Positions 13,841 to 54,191 of a stretch of DNA of 64,000 nt are shown here, piece by piece. The number at the start of each line of letters is the position of its first letter. The first letter of the stretch is position 1. The notes under the pieces were generated by a model. The model made no database searches and had not been told where the DNA came from. It worked only from the letters and a program-made list of their open reading frames with translations. The position numbers and the translations under genes are program-made. Source of the DNA: Takakia lepidozioides (taxonomy: Eukaryota; Plantae; Bryophyta); assembly GCA_030704615.1 (NCBI GenBank), contig CM060732.1, positions 78,244,001 to 78,308,000 of the forward strand. Direction: 5' to 3'.

Positions 13841-15140
13841 CATGCCCAAAGACTATCTACTGTGAATACATGCTTCCTTCTCTCTACACAAAATCATGAA
13901 CTGAATTGTATACTCTATTTTGATGTGTAAAACACATGCAGAATTTTCCCTGTGTCGTTTGAGGGGCCTCAAATGACATTAATTTTTTAAGGTTATTATG
14001 GATGGGGTCCTCACAGGTCTGTAAGGTGCTCCCTTGTTTCTTCTCTTACATTTATTTTTCTCTTATGCACATACACACTCTCCTTAGTGGGGCTAGGTTT
14101 TAACCAGCGAAAGCCAGTCCCTGTCTCAGATCTTGAGGGGCTTCATCATTTGGCATCCAAGGCCAACTTTCTTCCCCTCTCCCTCACTTTTCTTATCTTT
14201 GTTTGACTCCATCTCTCTCTTGATTTTTCCCGAAACACACATGCACCAGTGAGTTGTCAGAGGAAAATCTCCACCCCAGCCGATTATTTGCCATATTATT
14301 GGTTGGTATCGGAACCGCTCAAGGGGGTCTTTTGCAAGTTATGTTGTGGGCAAATCAACTCTTCTCCAGAGGCTATCTCCGCTCACATAATACTTTTTGA
14401 CAAGGTGCAAGGTCTGAGGTCACATGCACAGTTCATTGCTACATTCCTGCCTCTAGTAAAATGTCATTTTCATGCACATACAGACTATAGTTTAGGGTTT
14501 ACCTCTCCCTCTGGTCCTGCAATATGCCTCCGTAGGTCCCAAGAAGGCTGAACTTGTAGTTGTACTAGAGATCAAATATACACAGGAGTTTTGCCTTACA
14601 GCTTGAAGCAAACTATCAATCCCATTGCCAGCAATACCATCCAGTGTGCAGGCCTAGAATGGAGATAGTGAGAGATCGGTGAGTGACCATTCTCTGCCAG
14701 TGTTGGCTCTGGTGTGCCCTTGTGGCTGTAGTCCACATGATTTTGAGGTTTCAATCCACCAGGGTATGAGAGAGAGGGTTGCAAGACTATTAAAATGTCA
14801 CCAACGACGCAATGGCGCGAGCGTTGTGCGTGAGCGCGCGAGCGTACGCTCACGCATGAGTGACGTGGTGTGAGCGTCATGTCAGCATGCTGATGCGGCC
14901 ACCTTCCTCCTTCCTCAAATAACAATGAGAGTTAGGATCATCTTCAAAAGATGATTGTAGTGCATAGCGACAGCAAGACATGTAGACTTCGAACGGTGCA
15001 ATGACAAATGTGCTTTTAAAAGTTGTCACTCAGAGCTCACTCCGTATAGTTGGAGGCCATATCATTGCACCGCCGACGAATTGATGTGAATTACACATTT
15101 CAAATCATGGTCGTCCACATACCACATTGCATAGTTGATG

Positions 15141-17418
15141 CTACCCATGTGTTGTATCCCGCTGCAATAGAGTATCGACCTCGTTGAAACTCATAGTGGC
15201 CTGGTGAATGAAGTTGTCACGTTTGGGATCGCAAACCATCATCTTAAAAAATATGAAATACAAATGTTTGCAGGGTATGAATTTACCTCTCTTGCCCAAA
15301 CTGGTTGATAGCATATTCACAAAATCAGGACATGTGCAATTGGGGAAATTGGAAACCGTGATGTCGTAGGTCCTGTCATGAACAGCAGATGTGGAAGTGA
15401 TGATTGTGAATACCCGACCATATCCTGGATGGGGTACTTCCGTGGTGCTTCCAACACGAGCTTGGAGCATTCTTGCGGACTCCACTTTGCCAAAGTGTTC
15501 AGCGGTTGGAGGGAAACGCCGAACGAGCTTTCCATCTGGAACAAAGTGTCCGCCTCCTTCATTGTTCTAGCATCTTTGTACTCTTTGCACAATTTACGGT
15601 GCTGAGTCTATATCTTTGGTTTGATGTCCGACTTTGTATGTTTTTCCAGAGATTGTGTCCAATGGAATAGACATGTACGCTCTCTTCCTCGCATTGGCAC
15701 TTTTGGGTCGCCCGATCCGAAGACAATACGAATAGCATTGAAATTTGCTTGAGCACTATCCGCCATGAAACCTGCGAAATTTGGAGATGGCAACCCATGA
15801 CACGTATCAGGGAATTCCACATGAGCTTCTGGGATTCCGTATCCTCGGATTGCATGTCACAAACTGCAATTGTCATAACTCGTTGGTACACTGGATCGTA
15901 GACATGACAAGCCATTGTCGTCCAATCCTTCACTCGTTTCACATGATCAAACATAAGAAAACAGTTCTGCAAGTCCCCAGTCTTCTGCATCCGCTTCACG
16001 AGGCTAACCCCACTGCCCTCCCCAATAGTCGACATTTTGAAAAGAAAAACTTTGATGGCACCTTGACCTGGGAATACATTGTCCTGGATGTAATCGTACT
16101 TGCTCACTCGTTTCAACTCCAAAATGTTGTCTATGTAGCCTCTGATACCAAAGCCCATTCTTAATGCATTGATCTGATGCCGAATGTTAAGTGAACTCAA
16201 AGTGGAAAAATGATCCATGACCAGGTCCAATGCTGCACCGTCAAGTTTAGTCCCCACAGAATCCCCTCCACTCAAAATATGGCTTTCCAAGAAGGATTTG
16301 CTTGCGCCAAGAGCAATTGCAGATGTTGTTGCGGATGGGTTTCTCCCAAACTCCTGTTTAATCAACCTCGATACTGTCTCAACACTCTCCCTGTAATCCC
16401 CCTTCGAGACAGGATGGTTATGGAATCCGAAATGCACACAAGCTCTTGTCATTGTTTTCAAATGGTGGACAACATAGTACATTCTTGCTCCGCAGAGCGC
16501 CAAGCAGGATGGCACAAGTTTGCAGAATTTGCAGACGAAAGTGTTTGCCGGTGGAGGGGCAGTCCCAGGCTGAAATGGATTTTCCGCCAGACCCTCCCAT
16601 TCGCTTTGATTATGAACCCCAGACTGAAAAAAATGTCTGCAATTCAAATTATCACACCTAAGGTGTCCATTGCAAATTGTTCTCCTGAAAACAAGCTGGT
16701 CATCATTCTGAATATTGGATGTTTTTGTTCTGCACCACGGGTGCCCGTCGTGTTTCTTGTCCATTCCATGCATCATGATTGTTACACCTCCAACTCGCGG
16801 AGGAGGAGGCAGCTCGAATAGGATATCGCCATCAAAAGTCTCTGGCAAGAACTTCACAGGCACCTGCTTCAAAGATTCCCAATCAATTCCTCGCAACTCA
16901 CTTTTGAATCCAGCCATTCCTCCCATCGCCCGTAATTTTGGAATGACACTACAAATCTCTTCTTCATCAGCTTCTCCAACCACAGTAGGAAGGACTGGAT
17001 TTGGAATTTCACTTATGTCATCATCGGACGAATCCGAAAGCTCAACGATTGGAGTGGAGGACGTCTGTTCTTTTTTCACCACCACCTCCCTCTTGTCTTC
17101 AACGATCGAAGCAGCAGTCTCGGGCGTCACATATGACCCAAGGGACTTTCGCCGAGGCTCTCCAAGTACTCTGTATCGACCAGGGCGCACTCTCCACTGG
17201 CTGATATGAGTCGTCTCATCACGGTTTTGGAAAGAGTATTTCAACAACTTCCCTTTCAAATCGTACACCTCTTTCTCCAAAAAGATGGAGCCATTCTAAA
17301 GCTGAAAACGGGTAGCCAAGACATGTTCCAGAACAATTGCAAATCCATTGTCAAGGACTTCCTGGGAGAACGACACTGGTTTGTCGTCAGAGAAGAACTC
17401 CGCTTCAGAGGAAGCCAT
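15141..17418 (-). pseudogene. MULE transposase, family B: GCM-like Zn domain, DDE core, SWIM finger; has a stop, frameshifts and an internal deletion
   Basis: DGHPWCRTKTSN..ICNGHLRCDNLNC..CKFCK..C..FGFHNHP (GCM-like); FDHVKRV, FMADSAQ, CLFH (MULE D, D, CxxH); CTCPDF..CKH (SWIM). Relative to family A it lacks the segment carrying the third acidic residue (junction ~15530). Confidence 0.85.
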
Positions 17419-20400
17419 CTTCCTTCCTCGCGTACGTTGATACCTTGTTATCGCAGACCTTCAGTGTAAATCGGTTTACTGATGTCTCCAGAACACAGTT
17501 GAAGAATGAGCAGAGAATATGGCGGAGGAAGCTCAGACGACGACTGTGCATATTCTGTTATTCTTTCCAGATATGCAGCCGTCCATTTTAATTACTTTTC
17601 TTGTGGGCCCAGTGGTCAGAGTATCCCTAGGAGCAATGTCGGCAGCTGTTAAACCGTTAATCAGAACCTCATTAACAAACACAATAACAAGCCGACTTCC
17701 TGGAAGCATGCCACAAGGTCTGAGGGTGGGATTGCAGATTAAGTAAATGTATCTTTATACTACTACCAATGATCATGTGCACCTGGAAAGTTCAAAATGT
17801 GAAACGAACGTGGGGTTGGCTAACAAGGATGACCGTGTATGATATCCCAAAATTTGTCATCAAACTCTCGTTCATTTACATATATTTGTCTAAGATTGTG
17901 CGCCAAGATTTCTGGGATTCGCTGTTATTTTTAAATATTGGAACTGTTCTAATAAAAAACACGCCGTTTATTTTGGGCGACACATGCCAGTCATCGATAA
18001 CTGAATTCGAACAGCTGTACACTAATTGCTGGCATGTGCACTAATAAGGGAACGACTATGTGTAACGGTCACGCGAGAGGGAATCCGATGCTTCTAGAGA
18101 TAAGCAACAACAAACGCAATCCCGCAAGAAATCGGAAGTCACTTCGTTTTCCAACTTTTCGCGCTTAGAGGGAGAGTGGTAGTCAAGCTGGAGAGGGTTT
18201 CTTCTACTATACGAAAGACAAGAAAGTCTCTTTAACTTACTTCCCTTAGAGAGAGACGCAAAGCAAGAGAGCAAATGACGAGGCGTCGTTTGTTGGAGAA
18301 CACAGGGCCAAGGCAGTAAGTGAACGCGGAGACTGATTCACAAGAGCAGACCGAGACTGAGGCAGCGGCTGTGACACAGTCGGTGATAACAGTGCGCGTT
18401 GGAAACCAGCCTGTGGATGCAGAGATGTCTCACAGGGAAAATTGAAGGAGGTGGAAGCACGAGGAACGCTAAACCGGGAGAAGGTCCAGAAACCCTAGAG
18501 CAGACAGAAATTCCAGCAGATGTGAGAGGGAAGAGGAAAGCTGCAGAAGGGGATCCAATTTCAAAACCTAAGAAGGCGCCAGTAAGTTTTCTGTAACTTA
18601 CATTTCATTGTTGAAGATCTGCGTAGAGATTGAGTTCAATGTCCCAGAAAGGGATTGTCGCTACCGACCATCACCACGAAACAACGGTGATTTGCTTTGT
18701 ACTCCTCTGTTAAGGGTTTACCGCACAATGAGTGGGTGACTGACGGTACCGTCAATCACCGTTGTTCAGATCAAACAGTCTGTCTGATTGCCTTTCAAGC
18801 AGTCCTTCCTCTTCCCTTCTTAAGTAGGAACATGTGATTGAAGTCTGCTGAATTGCGAGCGTCGTTAACGCCATTCGATTCAGGTAGAGTATGGATTGCA
18901 AAGTACTCTCGATATAGACAGGAAACCGTGAATGCTTGCAACGGTAATCACAATGGAGTCAATCTGAATAATCTGCACTTACTGTCCGCCCTAAACTATA
19001 CTGAATGTCGTTGCCGCAAATCACTTACACATATATGTCATTACACAACACCGATCCGGCAGGTCCTTATCTTTTGTGATTGTCGTTAACGCCGTTCACT
19101 ATCGCTCTCGCTTTTGTTTTGAATTCGGCAGGATCAGCTTTGCTTGTGTAGATGGTTCTGAATTTGTTTCACACCATTCCTTGTGAGTTTCTTCGAGATA
19201 GAGTGATGGTCGTTCACTATTTGCATATTACTCAGTCAGATTTGAATGGCATCGTGCAGAAAACTGTGAGGTCCAAGCCTACAGGATCAGAGGGGAAAGG
19301 ATCTGGAGATGGGGAGGAGTCTGGAAAAAGCTCAGAGAATACAGATGAAGCAGATGAATCTGAAGTGCACTACCTTGACAAGGTGAAAGAACTCATGTCA
19401 TTCCAGAAGGTAAACCTCAGGAGGTTATAAGGGACATGCTCGTATCTGGGAGGCGTCTGGACGTCCCTCTGTGCCGGATGATATCTATGCCTGTTGTGCG
19501 TCCACCTCTTTCCCATGACATAACAAAATTGGAGAGTGATTTTGTGCATGGATACAGACTTGGTGGTCAAGTTTTTTATGTGTCACTAACGGATATAAAT
19601 GCGAAAAGCACATTAGTGTCTCCAGAGATCAGTGATAACTGGGATGAGTGTTGGAAAGATGCCAATGAGGAGTTCGAGCTGGGCCTCATGATGGGAAAGA
19701 ACACCCAGCAATTCTGCAACCACGTGTTCTACGTCTGGGACGGCAATCACCGATTGCTGGCATGGATGGGATACATCCAGAAACACCATGCGAAAGACAA
19801 AGACAAGCATGTTGTTGTGGAGGCAATGGTTTTGGATCCTGGAAACGACATCGCTAGGCTTCTTACAGCTATGCACGACGTGAACAAGTAAGTCATCCTA
19901 GAGATTTCATTCCCTCTATAGTGTCTTGTTAATCCCCAAAAAACAGAGTTAAGGAGTGCAATGTTTGCAATGTTTTTGCAGATCGACAGAGAAATCGCAT
20001 GTGACAACAAGCTTGGTCCACACACTATTCCGAATTCAGAGGATTGGTCTGATGAAGCTGGATGATTTTCGGACAGTACTCCCACCCAATATAATCAAGA
20101 AGTGTGAAACAGGAAGAGCTGCAGGCACTTGGTATTCTTTGACTCGAGAGGCGTTTCTGGAGTACATGTATGCGGTAAGCCCGAGTCTGTACTCAGTTTA
20201 CTTTTTGAGTACATGTTTATAGTCCCTTCGGTGCTTATCACTATTTGAATCAATGCAGCAAGAACTGGCAGAGGCAGCTGAGAAGGGAAAATCCGAATAT
20301 TACTGCACTACACCAGAGGAACTAAGGACATCAAAGGGTGTGGAAGCAGCAATAAAGAAGGAGTTTGAAATGCGAAGAACCAAATTGATGTCCGACTTCG

Positions 20401-21089
20401 GAAAGCAGCTTAGAATAGTAGATCCTGGACTTGGTTCTGAGTTCCTTCAGCAGATCAAATCTCACTATGACAAGCATGTGCATCCGGAGATGCAGCAGGA
20501 GAAATTGCACCGGTTGGCCATATCCATGGTCGACCCACAAACAAAAATAAGGTGGCTGGAGATATGGAACTCAGATCAGACAGTAAAGGACTTGAATCAG
20601 TTCCCAAAGAGCACAATACAGCCTGGCACAAAGGTGGAAGGAATCAGTGATTTGGTGTTTGATAACTGGCTCCACAAGGCTACATTTTGGAGTCAGGTGT
20701 GTATTCAAATAAGCCGTTTTCTTTTCTTCAATTATGTGATGAGTACCTTATTTGCAATACTGACAAATATACAATTTGCAGCTCGAAAAGCGCGCCGTCA
20801 TTGTGCTGGAACAGACTTTGAAGGACTTGAACATTTCGATTGTTTCCCCTCCCCAAATGTCATTGGAGGCATACATAAGGAAGTGGAGAGGTCTCACGTG
20901 GAGGTACTGTTTTTTCCGGGAGTTCTCCAAAGATGGTAACATTTTACGGTCCAACGACTTTGACAGTCAGGTTGGAGGAGAGTGGGCCATGATGCGAGTT
21001 GTGTACAGGTGCAATATCATACTGGAAACTCTACTGCATTTTTTGGGAAATAATTTGGCTTCATAAGGATTGTAATCATAGATCCAAAT

Positions 21090-22226
21090 TGAATGTCGTT
21101 GACGACATTCACTTATTTGTCTGAGTCATTCTTAAGCGAGAATTTGAATTCACCTGGATTAGGAGCTTAGGGGGTAATTATAGTGTCCCTGATTAGAATT
21201 GATAATGTCCCTGAATGGCGTTGATGACATTCACATCCAGAGTTGTTGAGATGTCCTTAGAGTTATGTAAGTTTTTGTAATATCCATAGATTTTACAGTG
21301 AGGGTTCCTCACTTCAGTTTGCTGAATGTCAATGCAGACAATCAGTTGTTCTGCATTGCTTTTGCCTCTTGTGAGAAATCTTGAGGCTTGATTAGTTGTG
21401 TTATCAGATATCCGGAGTGAATGTTGTTGACGACATTCACTTCTATGTCTGTGTCATTCACCAGCGACAATTTGAATTTATATGGATTGGGAGCTAATTA
21501 AATGGTTCCTTGTTGGTAATTTTGTGAATGGCGTTGACGCCATTCACATCCACTGTTATTATGAGGTCCTCAGTGTTATGTTCGTTATGAATGTCAATTG
21601 GAAACCAGTTTTTGGGGAGGGTTCCTTAGTCGACTTTCTATTTTCCATCAAATGAATCAAGGCCCCCCACATTGAGGCACAATGAAATTACCACTAGTAC
21701 CTCAGCAACCCATCTGTTGAAAACCTTGCTTCATGGATGTCAAACCCCACAATTTTTGAACATTTTTCATGATGCTAGAATGTTGATCACCAAGATGTTG
21801 AAATTGTTGTGCAGGGTGTTGGGGAGCTTATATAACCTTGCAGACTTGCGGTTTCTTCATTCATGTATTAATGACGTGGTTGCATAATATCTCCCGCAAA
21901 GCTGCACCAACTATGTGGCCTCTTTCCACGACTGGTTCTTGACTGTGGGTAACATTGTCTCGCAAGAGCATCCATTTCATTGTAGATGTCCTCGAAATCA
22001 ATCTCCTTGAAATCGACCAAGATGTTGTACAAGATGCAACAGGCATGGACCTGAGAAATCATTAGGCTTGATTAGCAGTGTATTCACAAATCCAAAGTGA
22101 ATGTCGTTGACGACATTCACTTCTATGTCTGTTTCAATCCAAAGCGAGAGTTTGCATTCACGTGGATTAGGGTGTTTTTACAGTATCATTGAATGGAATG
22201 TTTTAAATGGCGTTGACGACATTCAC
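21090..22226. repeat. Six family-B palindromes (G)TGAATGTCGT-TG-ACGACATTCA(C) within one intron
   Basis: Copies near 21090, 21212, 21417, 21524, 22095 and 22204, arranged as three pairs in a triplicated unit. Confidence 0.9.
21660..22065 (-). mobile_element. Possible PIF/Harbinger transposase C-terminal fragment inserted in the intron
   Basis: HACCILYNILVD resembles the ACCILHN end motif of Harbinger transposases, and the segment interrupts the triplicated intronic repeat. No TSD found. Confidence 0.4.
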
Positions 22227-24699
22227 ATCCGGAGCAGTCGTGTGGTCCTGAAAGGTCCTTGGAGAGTTCTCAGAGCCATTTCATTCTATGTTTTTTTCAT
22301 TCTGTGTTACTTGTATCTTACTCACTTCGCGCTTTGGTGGGTTGGGATTTATCTTATGTTTAACAGGTACACGAAATATGTGCTTATGGAAGGAAATCAC
22401 CTGAGCGGTATTCCAGACTATCTTGACATGTGGTCGGACCCTGCAAACGATCCAACCATGTATACTGCAGGGATATTGAAGGACTGGAGTCCTTCTCACT
22501 TCAGAGACTGTGGCTGGTACCTTGACTGCCCACCGGAGCACACGACCTTTCAAGAACAGCATATGAAATATTTGAACAATAATGTTGAGATGCTGGCGCC
22601 TCTGACTGACAAAGAGTACCAAAGAAACATAGCAACATTGGCTGCCAAGGAGCCTGATGATCAGGGAACGCCGCAGAAGGGAAAGAAGGCGGGCCGCAAA
22701 CCAAAAGACAAGGCTCTTGATGTCATAGCCATCTCACCAGCAAAGCCAAAGGACAAAGACAAGTCCAAAGAGAAGAAAAGGACAAGGGGAAGGAGAAAGA
22801 AAAGGAGATGGAGAGTGGGCAGGACTTCACTGCTGGAAGATATACCCACACAGTTCAGTGCGTGTTCGATGCCAAGCCACACCCTTCCCATTCTGATTCG
22901 GCAGGAGAGATTAAAATTGTCAATGAGGGTTGGCTGGCAATGATGCAGAGTCGAAAGAGAGGATACACTGGGGTGCCTTCGCCTACCTGGGACAACATAA
23001 TCTCATTCTTCAATTTGGTGAGAATTCCAGTTTCTTTCCTTTTTCTCTAAAAGTTTCATTGGCAGTATTTCAGTCTGGTTCTTTGAAAACATTATTGCCA
23101 TCGTTCTTATAAAAAAACATGTCTGTTGCAGGTGAGCACAGGTCCCACCTTCGTGTGCGGTGTGCAGAAAACATATGCGGCTGACATTGTCATTCTCGAC
23201 ATCCCGGATGGCCAGGCTGTGCCAGAAGTTCTTCCAAAGGGCAAGACGCCAGGCTGGAACAAATTCGAGGACAACTACTGGAGTTGGGTGTTCGGGTTCT
23301 GTAATAATTTCTTGCTGATGCAGGGACACTTCTGCTTTTTCAATCATGTGACAATGATAGTCGTCGGGCATTGGCATCATACCTCAAGTCTTCAGGGTTT
23401 GAAGTTTTGCGCACATGGAATTGTGTGAACAGCCTCTACCTTGTGAAAGGGGGTTTCCCTGGTCAGCTGGTATGGCGTCTCCCTTCTGCTTGTGCTTTCA
23501 TGATGAGTTTCAATGTTCTTTGCAGCTCCACTCTAGTAGAATCTGTCATGATCGACACCTATCATCACCGATTCGTGATAAAAATGATTGTTTTGTGCCT
23601 GAGTTCTGAATAGCCTATGTACACACTTCCACTATAGATTGTGTTTACCACACTAACCTGTTATCTTTGGCAGACGAGGATGTTCGAGGCGATCTGCCTG
23701 CGGAGGATTCGCACCTCCAAGACACCATCCTCCATCCGCAGCTTTGAGATTTCTGACCAGGGTTGTTTCGTCAACCCCCCCTATGAGCCGCATGTCGATG
23801 ACATTTTGTACAACTTCATGCAGTCCAGTCAGACCCTGAAGAGACCAGATGGCACTCCCTGGAGAGGTGCAAAGGAAAAATCCCAAGCGTTCATGCAAAT
23901 ACTGTTGGAGTCATGCAGCCACCACTCTGCACGGGTGGTCGATCTTTCTGTGTCCACAAGTTCGTTCTCTCCCTTCCGAATTGATTTTCTTTCACCTGTT
24001 CCATTTGCTTAAATCCCCCCTACCAAACTGTTCATGTCCTCCTGTCTGGTGGAGGAGCAACTTACCATGCATACGCAGGCGGAAGAAGCATTTTTGGCAT
24101 GGAGGGTGATTTTGACCTCTACAACACAGTGCTCCTCCCCCTTTTGTCTGGCTCCACTTCAGGCACACAGACTGATTGGATTCAAATTCGAAATGATGAT
24201 GATCCCGAAGATAAGCAGGTCGAAAAACGACTTTTCATGTGAGTAAGTGCTAAACCCACTTTGGGAGTCATACTCAATTTCTCAATAACATGAAAGTTAC
24301 AGTAATAACTTTTTCAGGCTGTCTTTCAGGAAAAGCAGCGGTGGATCTTCAGGTTATATAGTCATTTGTGGCGAGTCTGTTTTCGACAGCCCCCTTTCCA
24401 ATTTTCTGCTTCCTGGTTATGCCGAAGCAATGGCACTTCACGCGGCCGAGTCCCTATCCCGTGAATTTTTACTGCCCGGCCGTAGGTGTAGCCAGCGTAG
24501 ATCCGGAGTTCTTAAATACTTAGACTTAGATGCAGAGGAAGTGGGGATACATTGTACTGACTCTGAGTCAGACTGAACTATGTTCTTTTACTATTATGTT
24601 TCTTCCTCTTTGGAAAACGTTGAATCCCCTTCCTCCACCGTAGTTGTTCCTTTGGAAAGAAAAATAATCAAAGAATCAACTACCATTTAAATTGCAATA

Positions 24700-25125
24700 T
24701 GTATGAATCCATCTCACAAACCTCCCTCACTCTTGTCATATCCATTGTGCTTTCATCTACAGTGTATTCATGCGTGCTCCATTCATGAATGTTTTCCTTT
24801 GTTCAACATCCATTGTGCATTCATCCTCTGTACTCTTTCATCCACCCGACAAACCTTCCACACTCATGTCATATACGTTGTGCATTCGTCTAAAGTTTTA
24901 GTCATGCATCTTCCTGTCATGAATGTTTGTCATTGCTCAACATCCATTATACATTCATCCATTTGACTCTTATCCATCCCTCATTCATCCATCTACATTC
25001 ATTTTTCACACTCATCCATCTATTTATCATCCAACTATACATTCATCCATCTACATTCATTTTCACACTCATCCATCTGTTTATCATCCAACTATACATT
25101 CATCCATCCTTTATTCAATGCCTTT
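24700..25125. repeat. TCATCCAT-rich low-complexity subterminal tract
   Basis: Repeated CATTCATCCATC units with a ~58-bp tandem duplication. Equivalent tracts lie near both ends of family A (10870-10985, 13530-13620, 26540-26645, 52760-52850). Confidence 0.7.
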
Positions 25126-27827: not shown

Positions 27828-27855
27828 TTTGGCGACCATACTGGGGAACTGAGTC

Positions 27856-28416: not shown

Positions 28417-28437
28417 AAGAAATGAAAGACATGGGAC

Positions 28438-39046: not shown

Positions 39047-39084
39047 ACCGTGAGGACACGGCTTTTTGAGGGGGGAAGGGGTAA

Positions 39085-40082: not shown

Positions 40083-40602
40083 GTGGTTGCTAAATCCCCC
40101 CAGCTCTAGAGTGAACTTCTGCCCACTGGTGAGGGTTGTGATTGTCCTTTCACCAGCAATCAGAACTCGACATAGTTGCTTACACAGAGTTGCAAAGAAG
40201 GTGGAGAGGCCATTTGGTGCTTCAAACTTAAAATTTTAATAACTGAAGATTCATTCCGACAAAGAATATTCTGTGCTACTGGAGTCGGCATCCAAAACGA
40301 TGGCAGAACTGTCTATGAAGACACTAGCCCTGCTTTGCACAAAACCCTCTCTGTTCAAAAGCAAACTAGGGGGAGAAGAGAGGAGACTAAATTCCGAAGC
40401 TGCAGCCTCCGCATAACATGGCAATTTAAAATCTGCTTTCGGACTTGGGAAAAATTGCGGGTTTGCAAAGAAAGGGAGGAACCGTGACGACCTTGGGCTC
40501 CTGTACACACAAACAAACAATGTAAGTCCATATACATTCTGCTGGCCCAACTTGTGCAGGATGCGCCATCGTGTCAGTGAAGTGCCACAACTGAACTAAC
40601 AC

Positions 40603-43600: not shown

Positions 43601-46600
43601 TTGAGGTTTTTTTCTCGCCGTATCCATCTCATCTTTCATTTTGGTTTCCACCCCGTTCGATGTTCTCTCTTCCTCCGGGGTAGTGGCATAATACTCCAGC
43701 TTTGCTCGCTCTCCAACATCCGCAATTTCTTGCTGTGACACAAGAACGTTGCCCTATTATTACATCTTCAATCCAAAAATGAAAGAAAACTCAAGATTGA
43801 AAAGGAACTAGTCTTACCGCGTATAAGTACTCGAGGAAAGCTTCCCTCGTCAGATTGTACCAAGTTTTAGACTTCTTGATTGTTTGGCATTTCTTAAGTG
43901 TCTCCGCAGACAAGATGCTGGCGAATGTTTCCAACGGCATGACTCCTATACTTTGCATCCGAAACAGTGTATGCACTATGTTCGTGGTGGCGTGTGATGT
44001 CTCCGTGCCCCTGCATTGAAAGCAAATGAGTACAAGAATCTTGAAGCAAGGGACTTCATGTAGTTCATAAAAGGATACCAAACAAGACTTACTTGTTGAC
44101 ATCGTGCATGGCAGTCAGAAGCTGTGTTATTCTGCCTTGTGGATACAAAACCATTGACAGTACTCGGTGATGCCAGTCTTTGTTGTGGGCATACATTCTC
44201 GTGATATATTCCATCCAGGCAACCAAATGGTGATTACCATCCCATACGAAGAACATCTTCCCCGTGTACTGCCTGTAAGATGGGTTATAGGAAAGCTCTG
44301 CCTCAAACTCCGAATTCACCTCATTCCAAAGCGGATCCCAACCGGCCATAAGATCTTCGTCAACCATTTTCTCTGATCCCTGGATATCTGTCATTGAAAC
44401 GTAAAAAATTGCGGAGCCCTTCAAGTACCCATGGATGAAATCACCCTGAAGCTTCTTGATATCATGATGCAGGGCTGGACGAACGGCAGGCATGGAAATC
44501 ATCCTGCATAGGGGAATCATAAGAGTGTCGTCCCGAACTTCCATGGAATTTATGACCTTCCTGGAGTTTACCTTGGAGGTGTATATCAGTGAATGCACTT
44601 TATCTTCGTAATTGTCAGATTGGTCTTCATCTTGATTATCAGGAGCAAATGTCTCTTGTGCAGCCTGGCTTTCCCCCGCCTTCTTCCTTTTTTTCTGCAT
44701 TCATTTGTGTTTTCCCACAGCATCAATGTCTACTTGACAGTACAGAATAAGGTGTCGTCAACGATGCCTTAATCTGCCTCCTTATTTCAGTTTAAAACAC
44801 TCATTCAATATGACTACTCTCCACACCCGATCCTCTTCCTCTATGCATCGAAGTCCACTTTGTACACTCCAGATTAAGGTATCGTCAACGATGCCTTAAT
44901 CTGCCTCCATGTTTGTATTTAGAACAGCCCTACCCACCACTACTCCGGTTTATATCTGCTTCAAAGTATGCCTAGAAAGTGTTTTTGACAGGCCAGATTA
45001 AGGTGTCGCCTTAATTTGCCTCCTTATTTTTGTTTAAAACAACCCTTCTATGAGCATATTCCCCACCCTTGATCGTGTTCCTCTCTGTTTCATAGTATCC
45101 CCAGGAACTGCTTTTACACTCCAGATTAAGGTATCGTCAACGATGCCTTAATCTGCCTCCTTCGTTTATGTCCTAGACATCCCTCAAAGTGCAGACTACC
45201 CACCACTAATCCAGTTTACATCTGCTTCAAAGTATGCCATGAAAGTGTTTTTGACAAGCCTGATTAAGGTGTCGTCAACGATGCCTTAATTTGCCTCCTT
45301 ATTTCTGCTTTAAAAAGCCCTTCTATGACATGGTTTTTCACCCCTGAATGTGTTTCTCTCTGTTTCATAGTATCCCCAGAAACTACTTTTACACTCCAGA
45401 TTAAGGTATCGTCAACGATGCCTTAATCTGCCTCCTTCGTTTATGTCCTAGACATCCCTCAAAGTGCAGACTACCCACCACTAATCATGTTCATATCTGC
45501 TTCAAAGTATGCCATGAAAGTGTTTTTGACAGGCCTGATTAAGGTGTCGTCAACGATGCCTTAATTTGCCTCCATGTTTGTATTTTAAACAGCCCTTCTA
45601 TGAACATATTCTCCACCCCTGATCGTGTTCCTCTCTGTTTTATAGTATCCCCGGAAACTAAATCACTCCAGAATAAGGTGTCGTCAATGATGCCTTAATC
45701 TGACTCCTTATTTCTGTTTAAAGAAGCCACTGAATTTTGATACTCTCCACCCTGGATACTGTTCATCTCTACTTGAAAGTCCACTGAAAACTAGGTTTCA
45801 CTCCAGATTAAGGTATCGTCAACAATGCCTTAATACCACTCATATTTATGGTTTTGACCGTCCCCTCAATAGTCAGACTATCCACCCCTAAACCTATTTA
45901 TCTCTGCCTCAAACTATGCCTCTACGTACATTTTATAGGCCAGATTAAGGCATCGTCAACGATGCCTTAATCGTCCTCCATGTTTCAGAAAAAAAACAGC
46001 CACTGAATGTGCTCCTCTCTGCATCAAAGTATTCGAAAAACGGATTCTAACTCCCAGATTAAGGTATCGTCAACGATGCCTTAATTCCCCTCCTCATTTC
46101 TGTTTCAGATATCCCCTCACTGTGCAGACTACCCACCACTCAAACACTCAACTCGGGAATGACAGACTATATTAAGGTGTCGTCAACGATGCCTTAATTT
46201 GCCTGATTCATTCTGCTTCAGAAACCCCCTCACTTTGCCGACCAGTAAGCTTGTTCGTCTCTGTTTCGAAGAAACCCTGGGAATAGCATAGTAGATTAAG
46301 GTATTAATCTGCATTCTTCATCCTGCTTCAGAGTCCACTCATACAGCGGAAACTTGTGCTTTAATCGTGATCCTCTATGTTTGAAAGAAAACCCTCAATA
46401 TCTGAATGGCTGACCAGATTAAGGTATCGTCAACGATGCCTTAATCAGCCCCCTTCTGTCTGTATCAAAGTCTCTGAATAACCCACCAGCCTTGTCTTCT
46501 ATGCTTCAAAAAACCATGGCAGACTTTGAACTTTAGCACCTCTTTTCTGCTTCACAACAACCCTCACAAATGAGAATGGGCAAGCTAGAATAAACCTTCG

Positions 46601-47700
46601 TAGGCTTTGGACGGCCGCTGGAAGACCCCTTCTCTGCAGGTCGCATTGTTCCTTGCACTTGTGTCTTCCCCTTCACTCGTGGTTGTGTGTCAACTGGCTG
46701 CTCAACTGTTGCCACAGCCCGCTGCGGAGAGTGAACCCTGGATACCTCCTCCTCAGTCACCACGTTGATGTCCACTTCAGGGTTCTGGTCTGGTGCGTTC
46801 TTCTCGGCTGGTAACTCTCGGAGACTCTCCCAGGCTTTCTTCCGTTTCCTCTGAAAAACATCACACATTGTTTGAAAGACAAATCAGGCCCATTTTAAGC
46901 TTGTGTTGATGACACCTTAATTTGGCACTTGCATTAGAACATGAGGGAAACAGAGAGGAGGGTAAGGCGGGGAGGATGCGATTGCAGATTAAGCTGTCGT
47001 CAACGACATCTTAAAATGCAGGACATACTTCGATGGCTCCACCAGTTTTCATCTCTAACAATGCAAAAACAAACTGAACTATGCATCACAATGGTGGTGC
47101 TACCTGAAGGAGACTTTGTTCAGCACTGTCCATCTCCAAATCCACTGCTCGCATGCTGCCTCCCACTTGTGCCTTGTCCTTCAACGCCCGCAAAGACAGC
47201 GCTGTATTGGATGGGCACTCCCGGGTATTCACGGCCACCTGCTTCGTTACGACCTCCTGCACAGGAGTAACATCACTGCCTGGCATGCCTTCCTCCTCTC
47301 TTATAGGTGACATTCTTTCCATCTCAGCCTCACGCAAAAGGGGAAGTTCCAAAAGCTCCTCCAGCTGCTTTTCCACATACGGCTCCACAACTCCCCTATT
47401 CTGTAACCCTTCGCCAGCAGATCCCTCCCCTTCACGGTCACTCTCCCCCTCGGAAAGATCAAGCGCCCTCCGAGTCTTCCTCATCCTCTCTCTCGCTTTC
47501 AACCTCTGCCTCGCCGACGTGTAGTAAAGAGACTTCCTACGCGTCCTCTTCTTTGCACTAACAATGACGTTCTTGGGAGGCTCCAGTGTGAATAGTTCAA
47601 AATGACACTAACGGGACACTCATCTTCCAACACTCCATTAGGGTCCACGAAACGGATGGATGGATGGCGGTTGGGGTTTCATCTCCGAAATCATCCATTT
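40603..47700 (-). pseudogene. Multi-exon ParB/Srx-like plus beta-class amino-methyltransferase-like gene, family A
   Basis: About 10 exons: FVWDGNHHLVAW (~44230), WLHKATFWSQ, DCGWYVDCP, TDLVILDIPDG (~41525), FLSDTGSLLIF, REKSPAFMQTLIETCSRHGGKVVDLSMGT/GASFHACKYAGRQFFGMEGD, DFSCE* (40603). Colinear with 18275-24246. The start is approximate. Confidence 0.82.
44745..46446. repeat. Intronic array of 14 palindromic units ATTAAGGT(A/G)TCGTCAACGATGCCTTAAT, period ~105-145 bp
   Basis: Units near 44747, 44874, 44998 (centre deleted), 45126, 45264, 45401, 45539, 45673, 45808, 45945, 46059, 46172, 46275 (centre deleted), 46419. Spacers are related to each other, with an alternating ~275-bp dimer in the middle. 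Confidence 0.92.
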
Positions 47701-48127
47701 AGGATTATCCCAAAAAACAGAAACGGCTCTTAATTGACTTGTTCGAATTGCGGCTGGGGGGGTTGTCTGCTGTGCAACTTGGGAATGGCCAACTGGCATG
47801 GACCATCATTGCCGATCTGGGCCCTTTTAGTGGAACCTCTGCATGGAGACCACGTACCCGTGGGTGTCAGTTGGTGTTCCACCAACATAGAGGTCGTTAT
47901 GGAATGGGCTGCGGGTTTGTCCGAGGGAAATATGTCATTCTAAGAAAATTGAACGCACCCTTGTAATTCTTAATACTGCTGAGCTGTTTCTAGGGCGGCA
48001 AAATGCTGCAAGATTATCATGAGAATGATGGAAAAGAGAAAGTACACTGTGCGAAGATAAACAGTATGAACACAGAATATGAGTTCCCCACATTGTCTAG
48101 TGTGCTTCATCCCAGTCCATGCGTACC

Positions 48128-51100
48128 ATGTCCCCCACCTCAGACGTGGTAACACTGTACTCCCCTCTGCAAGCCGAGTACCTGAGCGCCGTGGCTGACG
48201 ACAATGGCCTGGCCATTTGTTGAGGAGGATTTGATTTGCATAACATTCCGCTTTGAGCCAGGGACCGTCCATGTGGTCAGAGAGGTGTACGACAGTAGTG
48301 AGAAGGTCGAGGGAACATAGGTTCAAAAGCCGCATAAACGGGATGGTCGAAGAGAGTGGAGAGTTCCACCCGCCAAGTACCGCGTTCATGGAGATCAGAG
48401 ACGCCTTTCATCGGACACTATACTCACGCCCGGAACAGCAGCTTCGGTGGTGCAGGCACCAAAGTCGGTCCCCATCAAGACAGAAGAAACTACCTCCACG
48501 ACATTTGTCGAGCTCTCGGATAGTTCGGAAGACGATGTCACGGAGGTCCCTCTTCCTACGAACCCTCCTATACTGGTAGACCCCGATGTCCATGAGATCA
48601 TTAGTGTCATTCCCAAGTTGCAGTCGTTGAGAGGGTTGCTAGGATGCAAGAGCGATGTGAGAGACATTGTTTGGGAAACACAGCGGATCCAAAGAGCGAA
48701 ATTTCTACCCCCTTACTTTGATGGAGACATCGTTTTTGAACTGTCACCTCCGACGTCATGTGGAGGTTTGGCTGGACTCATGGCGGGCATGGACAAGAAA
48801 CACGATGGACACCCATGGTGTCAGACTAAAACTTCCAATATCTGTAATCCGCATGGCCTGAAGTTTTGGAGATCCATTTGCGCTGGGCACTTGCGTTGTG
48901 CAAATTCGGATTGCCAGCATTTCCAAATGGCCAGTGTGGCAAATGAGACGGAGTGGGAGGGAGTCTGTGACAACCCATTTCAAGTAGGGTGTGCTCCTCC
49001 AAAGAGCAGTTTCGTCGTTTACAAGTTTTGTAAAGTCGTGCCACAATGCATGGCGGAACGCAATGCACGGATGTACTACGTGCTGCACCATATCAACCAC
49101 CTCACACGGGCTTGTATCCATTTTGGCACCCATGCCCATCCAGTGTCGCAAGGAGATTGCAGGGAGAGTGTTGAGACAATGCGTTCGCTGCTTCAGCAAG
49201 AATTTCAAAATGCTCCCATCGCATCACCATCAGCCATTGCTATGGCAGCAAACAAAGGCTTCCTACACAAACATCTGCTGGGGGAGTCAGACGAGACAAC
49301 GACTAAGTTTGATAGTGCATCGCTTGACTTTGTGATGGACCAATTCTCAACATTGGCTTCTCCAAATGCTCGTTATCAAATCAACGTTCTTAGGACTGGG
49401 GCAGGCAACAAAGGATACGTAGATAACATCCTAGAATTGAAGCGCAGAAGTCGATACGACTTCATCCAGGACAGTGTTTTCCCAGGATAGGGGTCCCAGA
49501 AAGTATACTTGTTCAAGATGTCCACTGTTGCGGAGGGTTTTGGAGTTAGCCTGGTGCGTAGAATGCAGGCCGGGGGTGATCTTCATAAGTCCTGGGTAAT
49601 GTTTGATCACGTGAAGCGAGTGAAGGATTGGATGACCATGGCCTGTCATGTGTATGATCCTACGTACCAGCGAGTTATGACTATTGCTGTTTGTGACATG
49701 CAGTCGGAGGACACAGAGTCCCAAATTCTTATGTGGAAGGCTCTAGTTAACGTCATGAGAGTTCATGGTTTGCCAGATGCAAATTTCACAGGGTTCATGG
49801 CAGACATCACACAAGCTAATTGGAATGTTGTGCGGACTGTGTTTGGCTCTGGTGACCTGAAAATACCAATGCAAGGCCGGGAATGCACTTGCCTCTTTCA
49901 TTGGACCCAGTCCCTTCGTCGGCACACAAAAAATTCCACAAAATTGGAGTTGCAAGAGGAGCACCTGCGACTATGCCGTCTATACAAAGATGCCACCACA
50001 GAATGGGAAGCAAATGCCATGTTTCAGACTATCAGAGCATGGTGGTACTCCTCTGAGGCGGCGAGTCTGGAGGGGATCAAAGAGCTAGAAGACTGGTTGG
50101 GCTTTTGGCACTTCAGATACAGACAGTGGGGTGCCTTTATGACCGCTATAAGTTAGACTCATACTACCATGATTTTCAATTTTTCTTATATATATGGGGG
50201 TGTGCACCAACGGCCTTGCTGTCCAGTCCAGTCCAGTCGAATGCTGCTCCACATAACAGTGACATGTGTGTGGCATTTACCTGCAGAATATGTAACTGGA
50301 AGACATTGCGGATATGCCATCCTGCAATCTCGCGGAGACTGTTCATAGTATGTGGATGGCACAATCCGGTAAGAACGGCCGGAACCTTTACGTTGCAATT
50401 GCAGATGACCTTATCCGCGCTCTTTCGCAACAAACAAAGTACCGAGACTTCCTCAGGGGACGGGGTGCTGGTAAGGGGCCGGACAGGGCAGAGTTGCTGC
50501 TCAGGGCTGCTAACAGATGCAAATATCCTACAAAAATGGCGCGGGCTGTTAACGAGTACACGATTGGAACACCTTTGCAGTCCAAGCTTCCACATCTGGA
50601 AGGTGAAAAGAGATTCAGATCATGTAAGCGCAAACTGGACACCCCTCCAGGATCGGCGGATGACTCCCATTGGCATGATAGAGACAATTTCTCCATACCT
50701 CGTGTGCCTGTGCCACCCAATTTCGGATGTATTTCTCCATCTGTGGATGCAGGTTCTTCTGCAGATTTCGATGCAACATATGCCACAGCTCCGGCACGGG
50801 GAGAAGGACGGACGCTGCTGCCGGTTGAGGAGACCGATTGTGGTGATGCAATGTGGCACATAGAACAGATTCCGAAAGGATCGAAAGTTGGTTGTTCTGT
50901 TATCATGGCATTGTCTTTTGTGAAGTGCACAACTAAAATTTGCAGAGGTGCTGGCGGGACTCCAGCACCGACAATCACAGGTTTGTTCAAATATTACTCA
51001 GCGCGGGAGTTTAGACCTCACAAGTTCTAGTTCTGCCCCGATGACATTCAGCATTGTGTGATGGGGACTTGTCGGGATTCAGTCATCAGCAAGCCTACCA

Positions 51101-51713
51101 TCCCTATCGTCTGGCCAGTCAAGGTCGGAACATCTCTCTCCAAACAAGAGATAGACATGCTGGAGGATGTTGGGTTTCGACTTCCAAGAGGCCCAACAGT
51201 CCTAACACCAACATCATCTCGTGGTACGCCATCCGCATTCCCTACACGTCCACCACATGGGAACGACTGGCCAATGAAAAGGAATGGAAAACCGGTTCGT
51301 CGTATTGAGGCAGGTGCGGATAACCAGTGCAAAATTGAGTCTACGAGAACCTTGCAGTGTCGGGTTACCCAAATTGTTAATGTCCCCCCTCCAGGCTATG
51401 GGCGGGTGTACAGTATGGTGACTTCGGGATCGGTTCTTCATGATAGGACTTATGAGATTACTATTGGGAATTTTCCTAATTGCACATGCCCGGACTTCAA
51501 CAACACGATAAACAGCTCCATTGGAAAGAGAGATAAATTAGGGACGGTGTCATTGATATAAAGAAATCCATTGTCATATGCAAACATCTTTACTACATCT
51601 ACAATCACAGGATGTTTTGTGATCCTCAACGAGACACGTGCATTCACCAATGCACAATGGGTCCCAGTGACGTTCAAACACTTCTGCAGAGAGATAGGGT
51701 AGTTGACATCTGA
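48128..51713 (+). pseudogene. MULE transposase, family A: GCM-like domain, D-D-E core, extra Cys-rich block, SWIM finger; stops and frameshifts
   Basis: DGHPWCQTKTSN..ICAGHLRCANSDC..FGTHAHP; FDHVKRV, FMADITQ, CLFH, CNLAETVH; CTCPDF..CKHLYY. Intron ~50148-50286; in-frame TAG at 49488 and 51028. Confidence 0.88.
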
Positions 51714-51822
51714 CGTGTTTTGTCGGAGTTCTGTATGTGTCAATGACTCCACTTTGCTGAATTATTTTGATATGCTCCACTATCGCGAGTTCACCAATGT
51801 TTCTTAATTTGTCCACTATTGG

Positions 51823-52685
51823 AAATGAGACCAGTCACTCTTCATGGATCCACTTTGATCAAGTAAACCCAAACCTTTCCCCATTTTTGGGCTTTTATTT
51901 ATTAATTTGATTTAATTTAATTTTTGTCTCTTATCGTATTTGGTGAAATTCCCATGTGTAAACAAGGCATGGGATTAAGATGTCGTTGACGACATCTTAA
52001 TTCGTGCTTCCCTGAGCAGGATTACAGCTCCCCCCTATGGTTCTCTCCAGCCAATCTAATTTTATATGCTCCACTATTGCGAGTTCACCATTGTTTTAAT
52101 AGATCCACTAATGCAGTCAATCTTCATGGATCCACTTTGTTCAAGTAAACCCAGCCCTTTCTCCATTTTGGGGCTTACATATATATATATATCTAGTGAT
52201 TTATCCTGTTTGGTGAAATTCCCATTTTCAAAGAGGACAAAGGATTAAGATGTCGTTGACGACATCTTAATTCGTCATTCCCTGAGGAGGGTTACAACTC
52301 CCCCCTATGGTTTTTTCCAGGCCAGATTTATTTTCTTGCAACAATTTACATGGGTTCATTTCTCATGCTGAGCATGCGATTTAAGATGTCGTTGTCGACA
52401 CCTTAATGCCTGGTGCATGCACTTGCTGATCCCTCACGAGACATTCATGGATCCACTTTGTTCAAGTAAACCCAAGCCTTTCTCCATTTTTGGGCTTACA
52501 TATATATAGGGCAGGGGATTAAGATGTCGTTGACAACATCTTAATTCGTCATTCCCTGAGCAGGGTTTCAACTCCCCATATGGTTTTTTCCAGGCCACAT
52601 TTTTCTTCTTGCAACGATTTTCATGGGTTCATTTCTCATGTTGAGCATGCGATTTAAGATGTCGTTGACGACACCTTAATGCTTG
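51823..52685. repeat. Subterminal tandem duplications carrying five family-A palindromes
   Basis: TTCATGGATCCACTTTG..AAGTAAACCC unit occurs three times; palindromes near 51976, 52225, 52381, 52519 and 52654. Confidence 0.85.
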
Positions 52686-54191
52686 GTGCATGCGCTTGTT
52701 GATCCCACAGGAGACATGCTCATACAGTCCTCCATAGTCCCCTCATCTGGACAACTTCTCATCCGTGCTTCATCCAACGTTCATCCATTACACTTTTACG
52801 TCCATCCCAAATCCATTCATCCGTGAATGTATCATCGTGCATTCGTGCCACTTTGTCGTGATGGAGCCTGTCTGTCTTCGGTCCGATGGAGCGGAGACTG
52901 TGTCTTTGCAGTGAAGTTGGGGTCCACGGAAATAGGCCCACTTGTCCCCACGGTTTTGGAGTCCGCAAGCGAAATCTGCTCACGCTTTGATTCTGCTCAC
53001 GCTTCGGGGAATCTGCTCACGAATCCAGGAATCTGTTCACAGGTCTGCTGCCCTCTGCGTAATTGGCGCTTTATGTACCCAAGATGGTTCTATGAGTGCA
53101 TACAATGAAGTTTCCTGACCTACGCGTCTTGCATTGCGTTTAGCAATGGCAACCTTTTGATTGTGGCGACAGATTTGAGGAGCATAGCCACAATATACAC
53201 CTTTGTAGCTATTTGGCGTAAGTGGTAACTGATTCCGGATTGCATTGTGGAGCCGTACACTAGCTTTAGTACACGCTTTTGCTGTCTACTGTTATCAATT
53301 TTTTTTTTCAGTTCTCTCTCCTCTGCACGTATGCGTTTCTCAGTATCTTTCTCAGCCTTGTCATGTACACGCTTTAACTTTGCATTTGCTCCTCCTTGCG
53401 CTGTTCTCTGGCTTTCACCGCGTCTTCCTTACGCTTCACTTTCTACTTGAGAGAGGAGAGGTACTCATCACTAGTCATTAAAATTGACTTAGAATAATCG
53501 ATCATGGGCTCCGATGCATCTCTGGGTCGACGCTTTTCTTGGATAGGGATCTCAGGCAATGTAAGAAATTGATTAATTGAAATTGGTCTCCTTACAGGTG
53601 CAAAAATCATTTCCTCAGATTGTGAGGACTGAGGATCGGTGGCAGAAGGAGAACTGGAGGGAGGGGAGCTGTTGTTGTCATCCACATCATCGGTACCTTC
53701 CTCATTTTCAACAAAGTAATGATTCATACCTGGTTGAGCAACCTGAATGATGTTACCAGCTGTTACCTCCTCAATTCGTAACTCCTCAATACGTAACTCA
53801 TTTTGAGCTGACAATATATCTTTTGGCTGGGGATGTGGATCGTCCGCCTCGAATGTGAATGCCTCAGATAGGCCCATCCTACCATGCATGGCTTCAACAT
53901 TTAGTGGCCAGATGCCGATGACTTTGAATCCACTTTTCACATTCTCCTTTGTCAAAGCTTTCCTCAATGACAGCGATACCCAGTGGGCTGGATCCTCCTT
54001 CCGTACTGTTTTTCCTTTGTTTCCCATAGTCTATACGTCTCTGTAGGCACGAAATGCAGTCTTAAAAGTTTTGAAAATTGTTACGTCAAGTGGCTGAAGT
54101 GCGTGAGATGTGTGCGATGGCAGGGTGATTAAATCCAACCCAACCTCCTTTGTTGCCTTCACCACATGAATAGTAACGTGACTGCCATGAC

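Follow-up and report, generated by a model that had tools for sequence, protein, structure and literature searches.

Genes in which a ParB-like domain is joined to a modifying-enzyme fold have been described beside the transposases of algal DNA transposons. The Ectocarpus element Sola1-1_Ec32 encodes, on the strand opposite to its transposase, a 1104-aa protein with ParB-like and N4C/N6A-methyltransferase (MTase) parts, and its authors, who cite green and red algal precedents, suggest a possible new class of accessory proteins which bind and modify their own transposon (PMC12477816, 2025). In red-algal Plavaka elements, PAG3 combines a ParB domain with a 2-oxoglutarate (2OG) oxygenase and lies adjacent to tandem inverted repeats, and its homologues occur in Chondrus Mutator, Zisupton and Fanzor-encoding elements (Petroll et al. 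2025, 10.1101/2025.02.11.637652). Iyer et al. (2011; 2016, PMC4738411) reported ParB-helix-turn-helix (HTH) proteins with Dam-type MTases in chlorophytes and chytrids, as well as ParB-linked MTases of phages. In this work we have analysed a 64,000-nucleotide stretch of the Takakia lepidozioides genome (GCA_030704615.1, contig CM060732.1, positions 78,244,001 to 78,308,000; called the window below), in which two Mutator-like elements (MULEs), A and B, each carry a transposase and an accessory gene of this kind. Judged by architecture against the published descriptions, the window genes match the algal ParB-accessory type: a ParB-like domain with a modifying-enzyme fold, a position beside a transposase, and inverted-repeat arrays. 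The combination, which the initial annotation of this DNA took to be undescribed, is therefore already described in outline for algal transposons by the two 2025 reports, and the window genes join that known, uncharacterised class. The Sola1-1_Ec32 protein resembles the accessory proteins studied here in being a ParB-like and MTase fusion encoded on the opposite strand of a large DNA transposon. Unlike them, it belongs to the Sola1 superfamily and to a brown alga, and palindrome arrays are not reported in the passage that describes it, the comparison being one of architecture alone. PAG3 differs in that its C-terminus is a 2OG-dependent oxygenase, not a methylase fold, and in that it is part of a three-gene cassette. 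Our literature search returned no report that places such genes in genomes of the land-plant type or within hAT elements, nor any of a non-canonical catalytic motif in such proteins. A class noted in passing for brown, red and green algae is now extended to land-plant relatives, because full-length homologues are present in multiple copies in the liverwort Riccia sorocarpa.

The same domain order, a ParB-like N-terminus followed by an N6_N4 methylase, is found in fusion proteins of phages and bacteria; these prokaryotic fusions are compact and intron-free and carry a canonical DPPY or SPPY motif, and in this they differ from the accessory gene. With ParB-parS, Noc and KorB the accessory system shares a ParB/Srx fold and clustered palindromic sites on the encoding replicon. 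In contrast to these systems, the accessory protein has DGNHR in place of the GERR CTP box, no HTH could be recognized in it, and it has no ParA partner. VANC, which is encoded by the VANDAL21 MULEs of Arabidopsis, is an accessory protein that recognises family-specific short motifs in the non-coding repeats of its own element and causes loss of methylation. Its motifs are not long palindromes, unlike the sites in the window, and we know of no relation in sequence or fold between VANC and the accessory protein. Eukaryotic beta-class amino-MTases of bacterial type also exist in bdelloid rotifers (N4CMT, which is among the structural matches given below) and in Marchantia (MpDN4MT1). Both differ from the accessory gene in being host genes with a canonical motif (TSPPY in MpDN4MT1) and proven activity, which in MpDN4MT1 is N4-methylcytosine (4mC) formation; to our knowledge, a ParB-like domain has not been reported in either.

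The window region is a nest of transposons with a GC content of 42-49%, and it holds three element copies (A, B and C) of two families within one Mutator-like lineage. Two proteins encoded in the window had no exact counterpart on record, and Rfam yielded no match. The elements and their genes are the following.

14802..25323: element B, MULE-like, with imperfect terminal inverted repeats containing GTGAGC repeats; delimited by a perfect 9-bp target site duplication (TSD) and by terminal alignment.
26402..53055: element A, MULE-like, of the second family, split by a nested retrotransposon; delimited by its TSD and by termini common to C.
10719..13840: element C, a 3.1-kb derivative of family A lying outside the region covered by the initial annotation; delimited by blastn to A and by its TSD.
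19379..24246, plus strand: accessory gene of B, about 10 exons, from tblastn against A.
40603..44700, minus strand: accessory gene of A, about ten conserved coding blocks, ending in DSDFSCE-stop.
15141..17295, minus strand: transposase of B, at least three coding pieces, 5' end undefined, translation read by eye.
48261..51720, plus strand: transposase of A, decayed, with in-frame stops and a frame change in the SWIM exon.

The duplications flanking B (aaatgtcac, at 14793-14801 and 25324-25332) and C (catgcccaa, at 10710-10718 and 13841-13849) are perfect over 9 bp, and the one flanking A (tacgtaatt / tgcgtaatt) is identical at 8 of 9 positions. Without its 13.4-kb insert, A measures ~13.2 kb. 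The non-coding DNA of A does not align with that of B. Their genes were aligned by tblastn: the transposases share 56% aa identity (open reading frames (ORFs) of B against A; 15144-17295 of B with 48261-51695 of A), the accessory genes 41-60% in about 10 pieces, and in both elements the two genes stand head-to-head. Eight introns are common to the two accessory genes in both position and phase. Seven of them follow exon ends reading MHDVNK (phase 2), EY[ML]YA (phase 0), TFWSQ (phase 0), ...YR (phase 2), SF[FL][NT]L (phase 0), FPGQ[LK] (phase 0) and LS[VM][SG]T (phase 1), and the eighth falls within a low-complexity stretch where exact placement is not possible. Introns in the window are of the GT-AG type and mostly 80-200 nt long. 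Since the 5' end is undefined, the length of the accessory protein, roughly 900-1000 aa, is an estimate from the exon blocks; its layout comprises a ParB/Srx-like exon 1, a central region several hundred residues long and a beta-class MTase-like C-terminus. The signature of exon 1 is VWDGNHRLLAWM in B and VWDGNHHLVAWM in A, and the C-terminus carries DIPDG ... PWRGAKEKS ... VVDLSVSTR in B and DIPDG and VVDLSMGTG in A. Element C aligns with A (blastn) at 84-90% identity at both ends and in several internal pieces, with a further 255-nt piece at 70%. Its two termini are still there, as are palindrome arrays and the 3' tail of the accessory gene, but the rest of that gene and the whole transposase are gone, so that C is a non-autonomous member of family A that arose by deletion.

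Every gene copy in the window is dead, the itemised damage being that of the A transposase given above and that of the two accessory genes. In the accessory gene of A, exon 3 contains a frameshift (about 43602-43607) and exon 5 a stop (WANPND-stop); that of B is broken by a 1-bp deletion near 23306, and its terminal NDFSCE-stop is reached only after a second frame change. Both indels of B lie in A/T homopolymer-like runs and may for this reason be assembly errors. The initial annotation had read A and B as separate elements with 9-bp TSDs, each with a transposase head-to-head with a multi-exon gene whose intron positions are conserved, and all of this agrees with our results, save for the single mismatch in the TSD of A; the common DFSCE-stop end that it also proposed is present in A and, as just said, conditional in B. 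Its description of the transposase as GCM-MULE-SWIM holds at the level of motifs. By eye, the protein has an N-terminal Cys/His finger of WRKY/GCM1-like appearance, a DDE core (FDH...CDMQSED...RERTCLFHW) with the C-x-F-H-W motif usual in MULE transposases, and a C-terminal CxC...CxH SWIM finger. The Pfam SWIM model PF04434 was matched with E 0.003-0.034 (0.003-0.004 in B), under the Pfam cut-off, MULE PF10551 and Transposase_mut gave no match at E<=10, and Pfam and PDB searches with the transposase returned nothing beyond the sub-threshold SWIM. The elements are Mutator-like; because Pfam gives no MULE match, the assignment rests on the 9-bp TSDs, the termini and the transposase motifs.

What kind of protein does the accessory gene encode? 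An alignment of 45 homologues of exon 1 served for a profile and for an AlphaFold2 (AF2) model, which reached a pLDDT of 89 and a pTM of 0.83. The matches of this model in the PDB (Foldseek) belong almost all to the ParB/Srx superfamily (Noc, ParB-CDP/CTPgammaS, sulfiredoxin, PadC, KorB, SbnI, serine kinase), the top ones with probabilities of 0.92-0.99, and a viral structure library gave phage ParB-like proteins with probabilities up to 1.00, the best being a mycobacteriophage 'DNA methylase'. The motif DGNHR is invariant in the 45 homologues and follows a hydrophobic strand; copy A reads DGNHH. In this superfamily the G-x-x-R phosphate-binding motif appears as GERR in ParB, GCHR in Srx and DGQHR in DndB, and by its position in the sequence pattern DGNHR would stand at the place of ParB GERR and DndB DGQHR. 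At the sequence level, Pfam matched none of the accessory exons of either element at E<=10 (for exon 1 this includes ParBc PF02195), and neither phmmer nor the 45-sequence profile found a ParB protein in the PDB. On the basis of the model we accept the predicted fold of exon 1 as ParB/Srx.

For the C-terminus, a profile that includes the window exons matched DpnA (1.4e-6), CcrM (7.4e-5), a cytosine-N4 MTase, Mod, MboIIA and RsrI. Riccia sorocarpa, which has at least 18 N-terminal and at least 28 C-terminal paralogues, was the only source of full-length relatives with gene models. A precomputed PF01555 match exists in 5 of the 28 C-terminal paralogues listed, and the paralogue P0256 scores 19.9 bits against this family, with a cut-off of 26.7. 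The AF2 model of Riccia P0256:805-1105 (pLDDT 81) retrieved CcrM at 4.7e-14 in Foldseek, together with M1.HpyAVI, M.BceJIV, MboIIA, bdelloid N4CMT, TTHA0409, RsrI and PvuII, all with probability 1.00. A window-branch profile, built from the joined C-terminal exons of A and B (with X at the frameshift of B) and from pieces of four related loci (L001, L002, L007 and L008), was aligned with a Riccia-only profile by hhalign at a probability of 98.8% and E 1.1e-16 over 209 columns. Motif IV precedes motif I, as in a circular permutation, with DIPDG in exon 7 and VVDLS... in exons 9-10. With these profiles and the model we regard it as established that the predicted fold of the C-terminus is that of a beta-class amino-MTase, in which motif IV comes ahead of motif I. 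The two folds that the initial annotation expected from profile and structure searches, ParB and N6_N4_Mtase (PF01555), were thus recovered, the former with the deviating DGNHH in A, and the window exons themselves matched neither Pfam family. Several Riccia paralogues (P0256, P0269, P0274-P0276 and others) are called 'Trimethylguanosine synthase' in UniRef, a name which looks wrong, and several are called 'DNA methylase N-4/N-6'. A TGS1-type methylase, as the former name would imply, was ruled out by the order of motifs IV and I and by the structure and profile matches, which are beta-class DNA amino-MTases.

The catalytic motif of this domain is unusual. The canonical (D/N/S)PP(Y/F/W) is present in none of the members examined, most of which follow the pattern D-[ILVM]-P-[DSTEF]-[GD]: DIPDG in A and B, DLPEG in L007, DVPED in L008, DMPSG, DLPSG or DMPTG in Riccia and DVPFG in P0226, the exception being L002 with DILDN. 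The S-adenosylmethionine (SAM) loop is near-canonical in Riccia (DFAGGWG) and reads DLSMGTG in A, DLSVSTR in B, DLSASTS in L001 and D[LI]TASTG in L007 and L008. As motif IV is non-canonical and the SAM loop is reduced to STR or STS in B and L001, a methyltransferase activity of the accessory protein appears doubtful. The deviation in motif IV is kept between branches that are less than 20% identical, so that the MTase-like domain must be selected for something, though probably not for standard amino-methylation.

The family to which the accessory gene belongs is large. Exon 1 has 77 exon-sized homologues in metagenomes, and the 45-sequence profile retrieved at least 1232 representatives (clusters at 50% identity). 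In three of the related loci (L001, L009 and L014) a homologous MULE-type transposase lies head-to-head with the accessory gene across a spacer of 4.7-5.8 kb, so that five MULE lineages, including A and B, have this layout. In three others (L010-L012) the head-to-head partner is a hAT transposase (Dimer_Tnp_hAT 7e-8, DUF659). L010 has the accessory/hAT pair at 6022-9616 and 9995-13507 and a second accessory copy at 17648-19006. No transposase was found within the available 6-10 kb around L002-L005, L013 and L006, the last of which is from Riccia. Among the five MULE lineages the identity matrices of the transposase and of the ParB exon agree in separating A and B from L001, L009 and L014; since both matrices give the same grouping, the module is old and co-diverges with the MULE transposase, yet it is able to move to other superfamilies. 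When A is compared with B, every part of both genes shows saturation at synonymous sites (pS 0.70-0.79), whereas pN is 0.28 in the transposase, 0.36 in the ParB exon, 0.32 in the middle region and 0.38 in the MTase-like part. Where dS could be computed, in the transposase and the ParB exon only, dN/dS was about 0.11-0.24, an exact value being blocked by saturation. These figures indicate that the accessory gene, including its MTase-like domain, is under purifying selection. The stable accessory module and the linkage to MULE transposases anticipated in the initial annotation are borne out by the five lineages with congruent matrices, by the values of pN (0.28-0.38) against saturated pS and by the size of the family, and the hAT loci add a second kind of partner.

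Its proposal of prokaryotic ancestry fared less well. Such an ancestry may be supposed from the likeness of the folds. A scan of 185,579 prokaryotic species genomes yielded no relative close in sequence and returned a single locus, L008, and a scan of viral contigs returned nothing. L008 (CADCWO010000058.1) is a 4.7-kb contig of an 'uncultured Synechococcales' metagenome-assembled genome (MAG) in which the gene lies in pieces in several reading frames; because it is split as if by introns, L008 is probably a eukaryotic contig mis-binned in a cyanobacterial MAG.

Both elements carry palindromes. The site of family A is TTAAG[GA]-TGTCG-T[CT][AG]A-CGACA-[CT]CTTAA and that of family B is TGAA-TGTCG-TTGA-CGACA-TTCA; they have the 14-bp core TGTCG-N4-CGACA in common and family-specific outer arms. 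The initial annotation gave each element its own palindrome set, and this is correct for the flanks, the sites being variants of one core and not unrelated sets. At no more than one mismatch the core was observed 25 times against 0.96 expected (maximum 4 in 100 shuffles). With the correct centre and up to two mismatches the count is 30 (14 in A, 6 in B and 10 in C), and in the whole window no site was found at this threshold outside the elements or in the nested retrotransposon. A laxer repeat search gave 22 copies in A. The sites, and a second repeat of the element ends, are arranged as follows.

21086..22229: six B-type palindromes (TGAATGTCG-TTGA-CGACATTCA), all in intron 4 (1358 nt) of the accessory gene of B.
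41681..42940: four A-type palindromes in introns of the A accessory gene, three in intron 4 and one in a later intron.
44747..47016: main A array in the 3.6-kb spacer between the genes, units of about 135-138 bp, centre TCAA.
51973..52681: right subterminal A array, five sites, centre TTGA, inverted relative to the intergenic array.
11727..13453: ten A-type palindromes of C, three with TCAA on the left, then seven with TTGA on the right.
24818..25105, minus strand: GGATGAATG subterminal repeats, at the end of B closest to the accessory gene; also in A at 26554-26625 and in C at 10888-10959.

Intron 4 is thus the homologous intron that holds palindromes in both A and B, and the same intron also carries sites in L002. 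Deviations of the palindromes from the consensus are mostly CpG-to-TpG/CpA changes (e.g. at 12479, 21422, 41689 and 42707), a pattern as would be expected if the elements were 5-methylcytosine (5mC)-methylated and decaying. The GGATGAATG repeat occurs in 13 copies (1.17 expected), all of them in A, B or C; 11 are clustered at the accessory-gene end, and single inverted copies lie at 52814 in A and 12841 in C. The element termini also contain GTGAGC(AG) repeats.

The core motif of the window was absent from all other loci searched. Lineage-specific dyad arrays adjoin the accessory gene in 7 of the 10 lineages examined, even in four (L002, L006, L008 and L013) that have no MULE transposase nearby. 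In L002 the dyad is centred on GGCTTGCAAGCC, within a 181-bp repeat present 24.5 times upstream, with three further sites in the homologous intron and three downstream. The Riccia locus L006 has the dyad CCCGGCGGA-n-TCCGCCGGG four times just upstream and once downstream, L008 has TGGGTCTCGGATCCGAGACCCA four times upstream, L013 has TTGCTAAATTTAGCAA within a 142-bp repeat present 10.7 times, and L001 has a 130-bp repeat with a dyad, present four times. L007 shows at 5122-5145, near its contig end, a dyad GCGTGAGC-ATAC-GCTCACG, which is like the terminal GTGAGC/GCTCAC of B; judging by this likeness, the dyad probably marks the end of an element related to B, and exon 1 of L007 is 59% aa identical.

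What, then, could the accessory protein do? Our working prediction, to which we give an even chance, is that it is a self-recognition factor which binds the palindromes of its own lineage and acts in cis on the element. It would bind them as a dimer, possibly in a nucleotide-dependent manner, and a ParB-like higher-order complex would assemble on the element. The palindromes would be dimer-type sites, spaced every 110-180 bp, upstream of the gene, in intron 4 and near one end. The protein would then act on the chromatin of the element by anti-silencing or self-marking, analogous to VANC, which is the weakest step, and autoregulation through the intronic sites may also occur. The methylase-like domain keeps its fold, and we expect a pseudo-enzyme that binds DNA or a partner, or else an enzyme with a changed chemistry, and not a standard writer of N6-methyladenine (6mA) or 4mC, because the catalytic motif reads DIPDG and the SAM loop is degenerate. 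Several observations speak against self-recognition. The Foldseek scores of exon 1 are weak (E 0.02-0.1, TM about 0.4), and in ParB the reading of DNA is not done by the ParB/Srx N-domain. The central region (exons 2-6), when searched as a profile against the PDB, gave nothing, and no HTH or known fold was found in it. The modelled MTase is that of a Riccia relative with 17-20% identity and not the split protein of the window itself. No palindrome or tandem array was found in L009, L010 and L014. The pairing of protein and repeat is ambiguous, since GTGAGC and GGATGAATG subterminal repeats are also present. Lastly, a role in transposition would account equally well for the opposite orientation of the two arrays within A and within C, and for the sites that non-autonomous C has kept.

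This last point leads to the main rival, in which the protein is a transposition cofactor without a primary epigenetic role. TnpA of En/Spm binds repeated internal and subterminal sites and brings the ends together for the transposase, and MURB of MuDR is a looser parallel, a second element-encoded protein with an unclear function. A cofactor of the TnpA kind would explain why C keeps 10 palindromes in 3.1 kb and why the arrays of A and C have opposite polarity on their two sides (TCAA and TTGA), and in five MULE lineages the gene is strictly linked to the transposase. All sites of B, however, lie in one intron far from both ends, and arrays accompany the gene where no transposase is present within 6-10 kb. 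Moreover, the gene also occurs with hAT, and related algal genes occur with Sola1, Plavaka and Zisupton, which makes tailoring to one transposase unlikely. For these reasons we consider a cofactor rather unlikely. Within the self-recognition reading, anti-silencing, self-marking or autoregulation are favoured for three reasons: the gene functions alongside no fewer than two unrelated transposases here and alongside further ones in algae, the arrays go with the gene and not with the transposase, and the sites of B are intronic, not terminal. Could the palindromes instead have nothing to do with the accessory protein, and be sites of the transposase or of a host factor, elements of a divergent promoter, or self-propagating hairpin satellites? 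Tandem repeats are common within the internal regions of MULEs, our search for a DNA-reading domain in the accessory protein found none, and the three lineages without arrays point the same way. Such independence fits less well with dyads that are specific to each lineage and adjoin the accessory gene in seven of ten of them, including loci without a nearby MULE transposase, with the use of the same intron in A, B and L002, and with the red algal ParB-domain genes, which show the same association independently; we would give it a limited chance.

Two more readings concern the gene itself. If the protein were an active DNA amino-MTase, it would mark the element as self by writing 6mA or 4mC at or around the palindromes, in which CpG and A/T positions are potential targets; the marking raised in the initial annotation and the suggestion of the Ectocarpus authors correspond to this reading. 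Retention of the beta-class fold and of its motif order, the purifying selection on the domain and those Riccia paralogues that pass PF01555 and keep the DFAGGWG loop are consistent with this. The catalytic motif is replaced in most members, however (DIPDG, DLPEG, DVPED, DMPSG and DVPFG, with DILDN in L002), the FxGxG loop has become SVSTR in B and SASTS in L001, and the active eukaryotic relative MpDN4MT1 keeps TSPPY, so that we think an active enzyme unlikely. The initial annotation had itself raised the possibility of an ordinary host gene captured once, in the manner of a Pack-MULE, and now decaying. Both window copies are indeed broken, but 41-60% aa identity has been kept in the face of saturated synonymous sites, five MULE lineages with one layout have co-diverged with their transposase, and there are 1232 clusters at 50% identity and dozens of Riccia paralogues. 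A single capture is therefore extremely improbable, and on account of the conservation, the common layout and the size of the family we rule it out in favour of an old, conserved and co-diverging family. On the whole, the interpretation given in the initial annotation is plausible and partly supported.

Few transposons are known to encode a protein that recognises the element it comes from, and among such proteins VANC alone has received detailed study. The present family, which is large (at least 1232 clusters at 50% identity) and whose ParB part is unrecognised by Pfam in the members examined, is linked to at least two transposase superfamilies, with candidate binding sites that differ by lineage, and it makes the question of how mobile DNA distinguishes self from host chromatin accessible to clean tests. 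Its systematically non-canonical methylase motif argues against the simple reading in the literature that such proteins write 6mA or 4mC. For annotation, a large set of 'hypothetical' or mis-named proteins is flagged as transposon genes. Perhaps ParB/parS-style self-recognition is widespread in MULE and hAT transposons of bryophyte-like land-plant genomes, with co-evolving protein and palindrome and with a methylase fold (D-hydrophobic-P-x-G) repurposed to a new activity or to a DNA clamp that shields the element from silencing. We offer this as speculation and hold it to be improbable; if true, VANC would have a second counterpart, with a different mechanism, and a ParB-type site-specific loader would be known on eukaryotic chromatin for the first time.

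The insert that splits element A stands outside the accessory system.

26675..40080, plus strand: nested Ty3/gypsy long terminal repeat (LTR) retrotransposon, 13.4 kb, inside A.

It is young, with LTRs that are 98-100% identical and long gag, reverse transcriptase (RT) and integrase ORFs. The duplication that flanks it, TAGTGGTTG, has 9 bp, more than the 4-6 bp that LTR elements usually produce; as TAGTGGTTG is single-copy in C and doubled in A, the insertion point in A is fixed. Its CpG observed/expected ratio is 0.39, compared with 0.59-0.68 in the MULEs. Degenerate tandem repeats with a period of 9-10 bp are present in its LTRs (26738-27164 and 39178-39418), and similar short-period degenerate repeats (9-10 bp) lie at 34540-34826, within the ORF that encodes the integrase domains. 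A second Ty3/gypsy fragment, within a stretch whose GC content is higher (0.51-0.54), occupies 55000-62600 on the minus strand, and its ORF at 57443-59413 encodes a zinc knuckle, protease, RT and RNase H.

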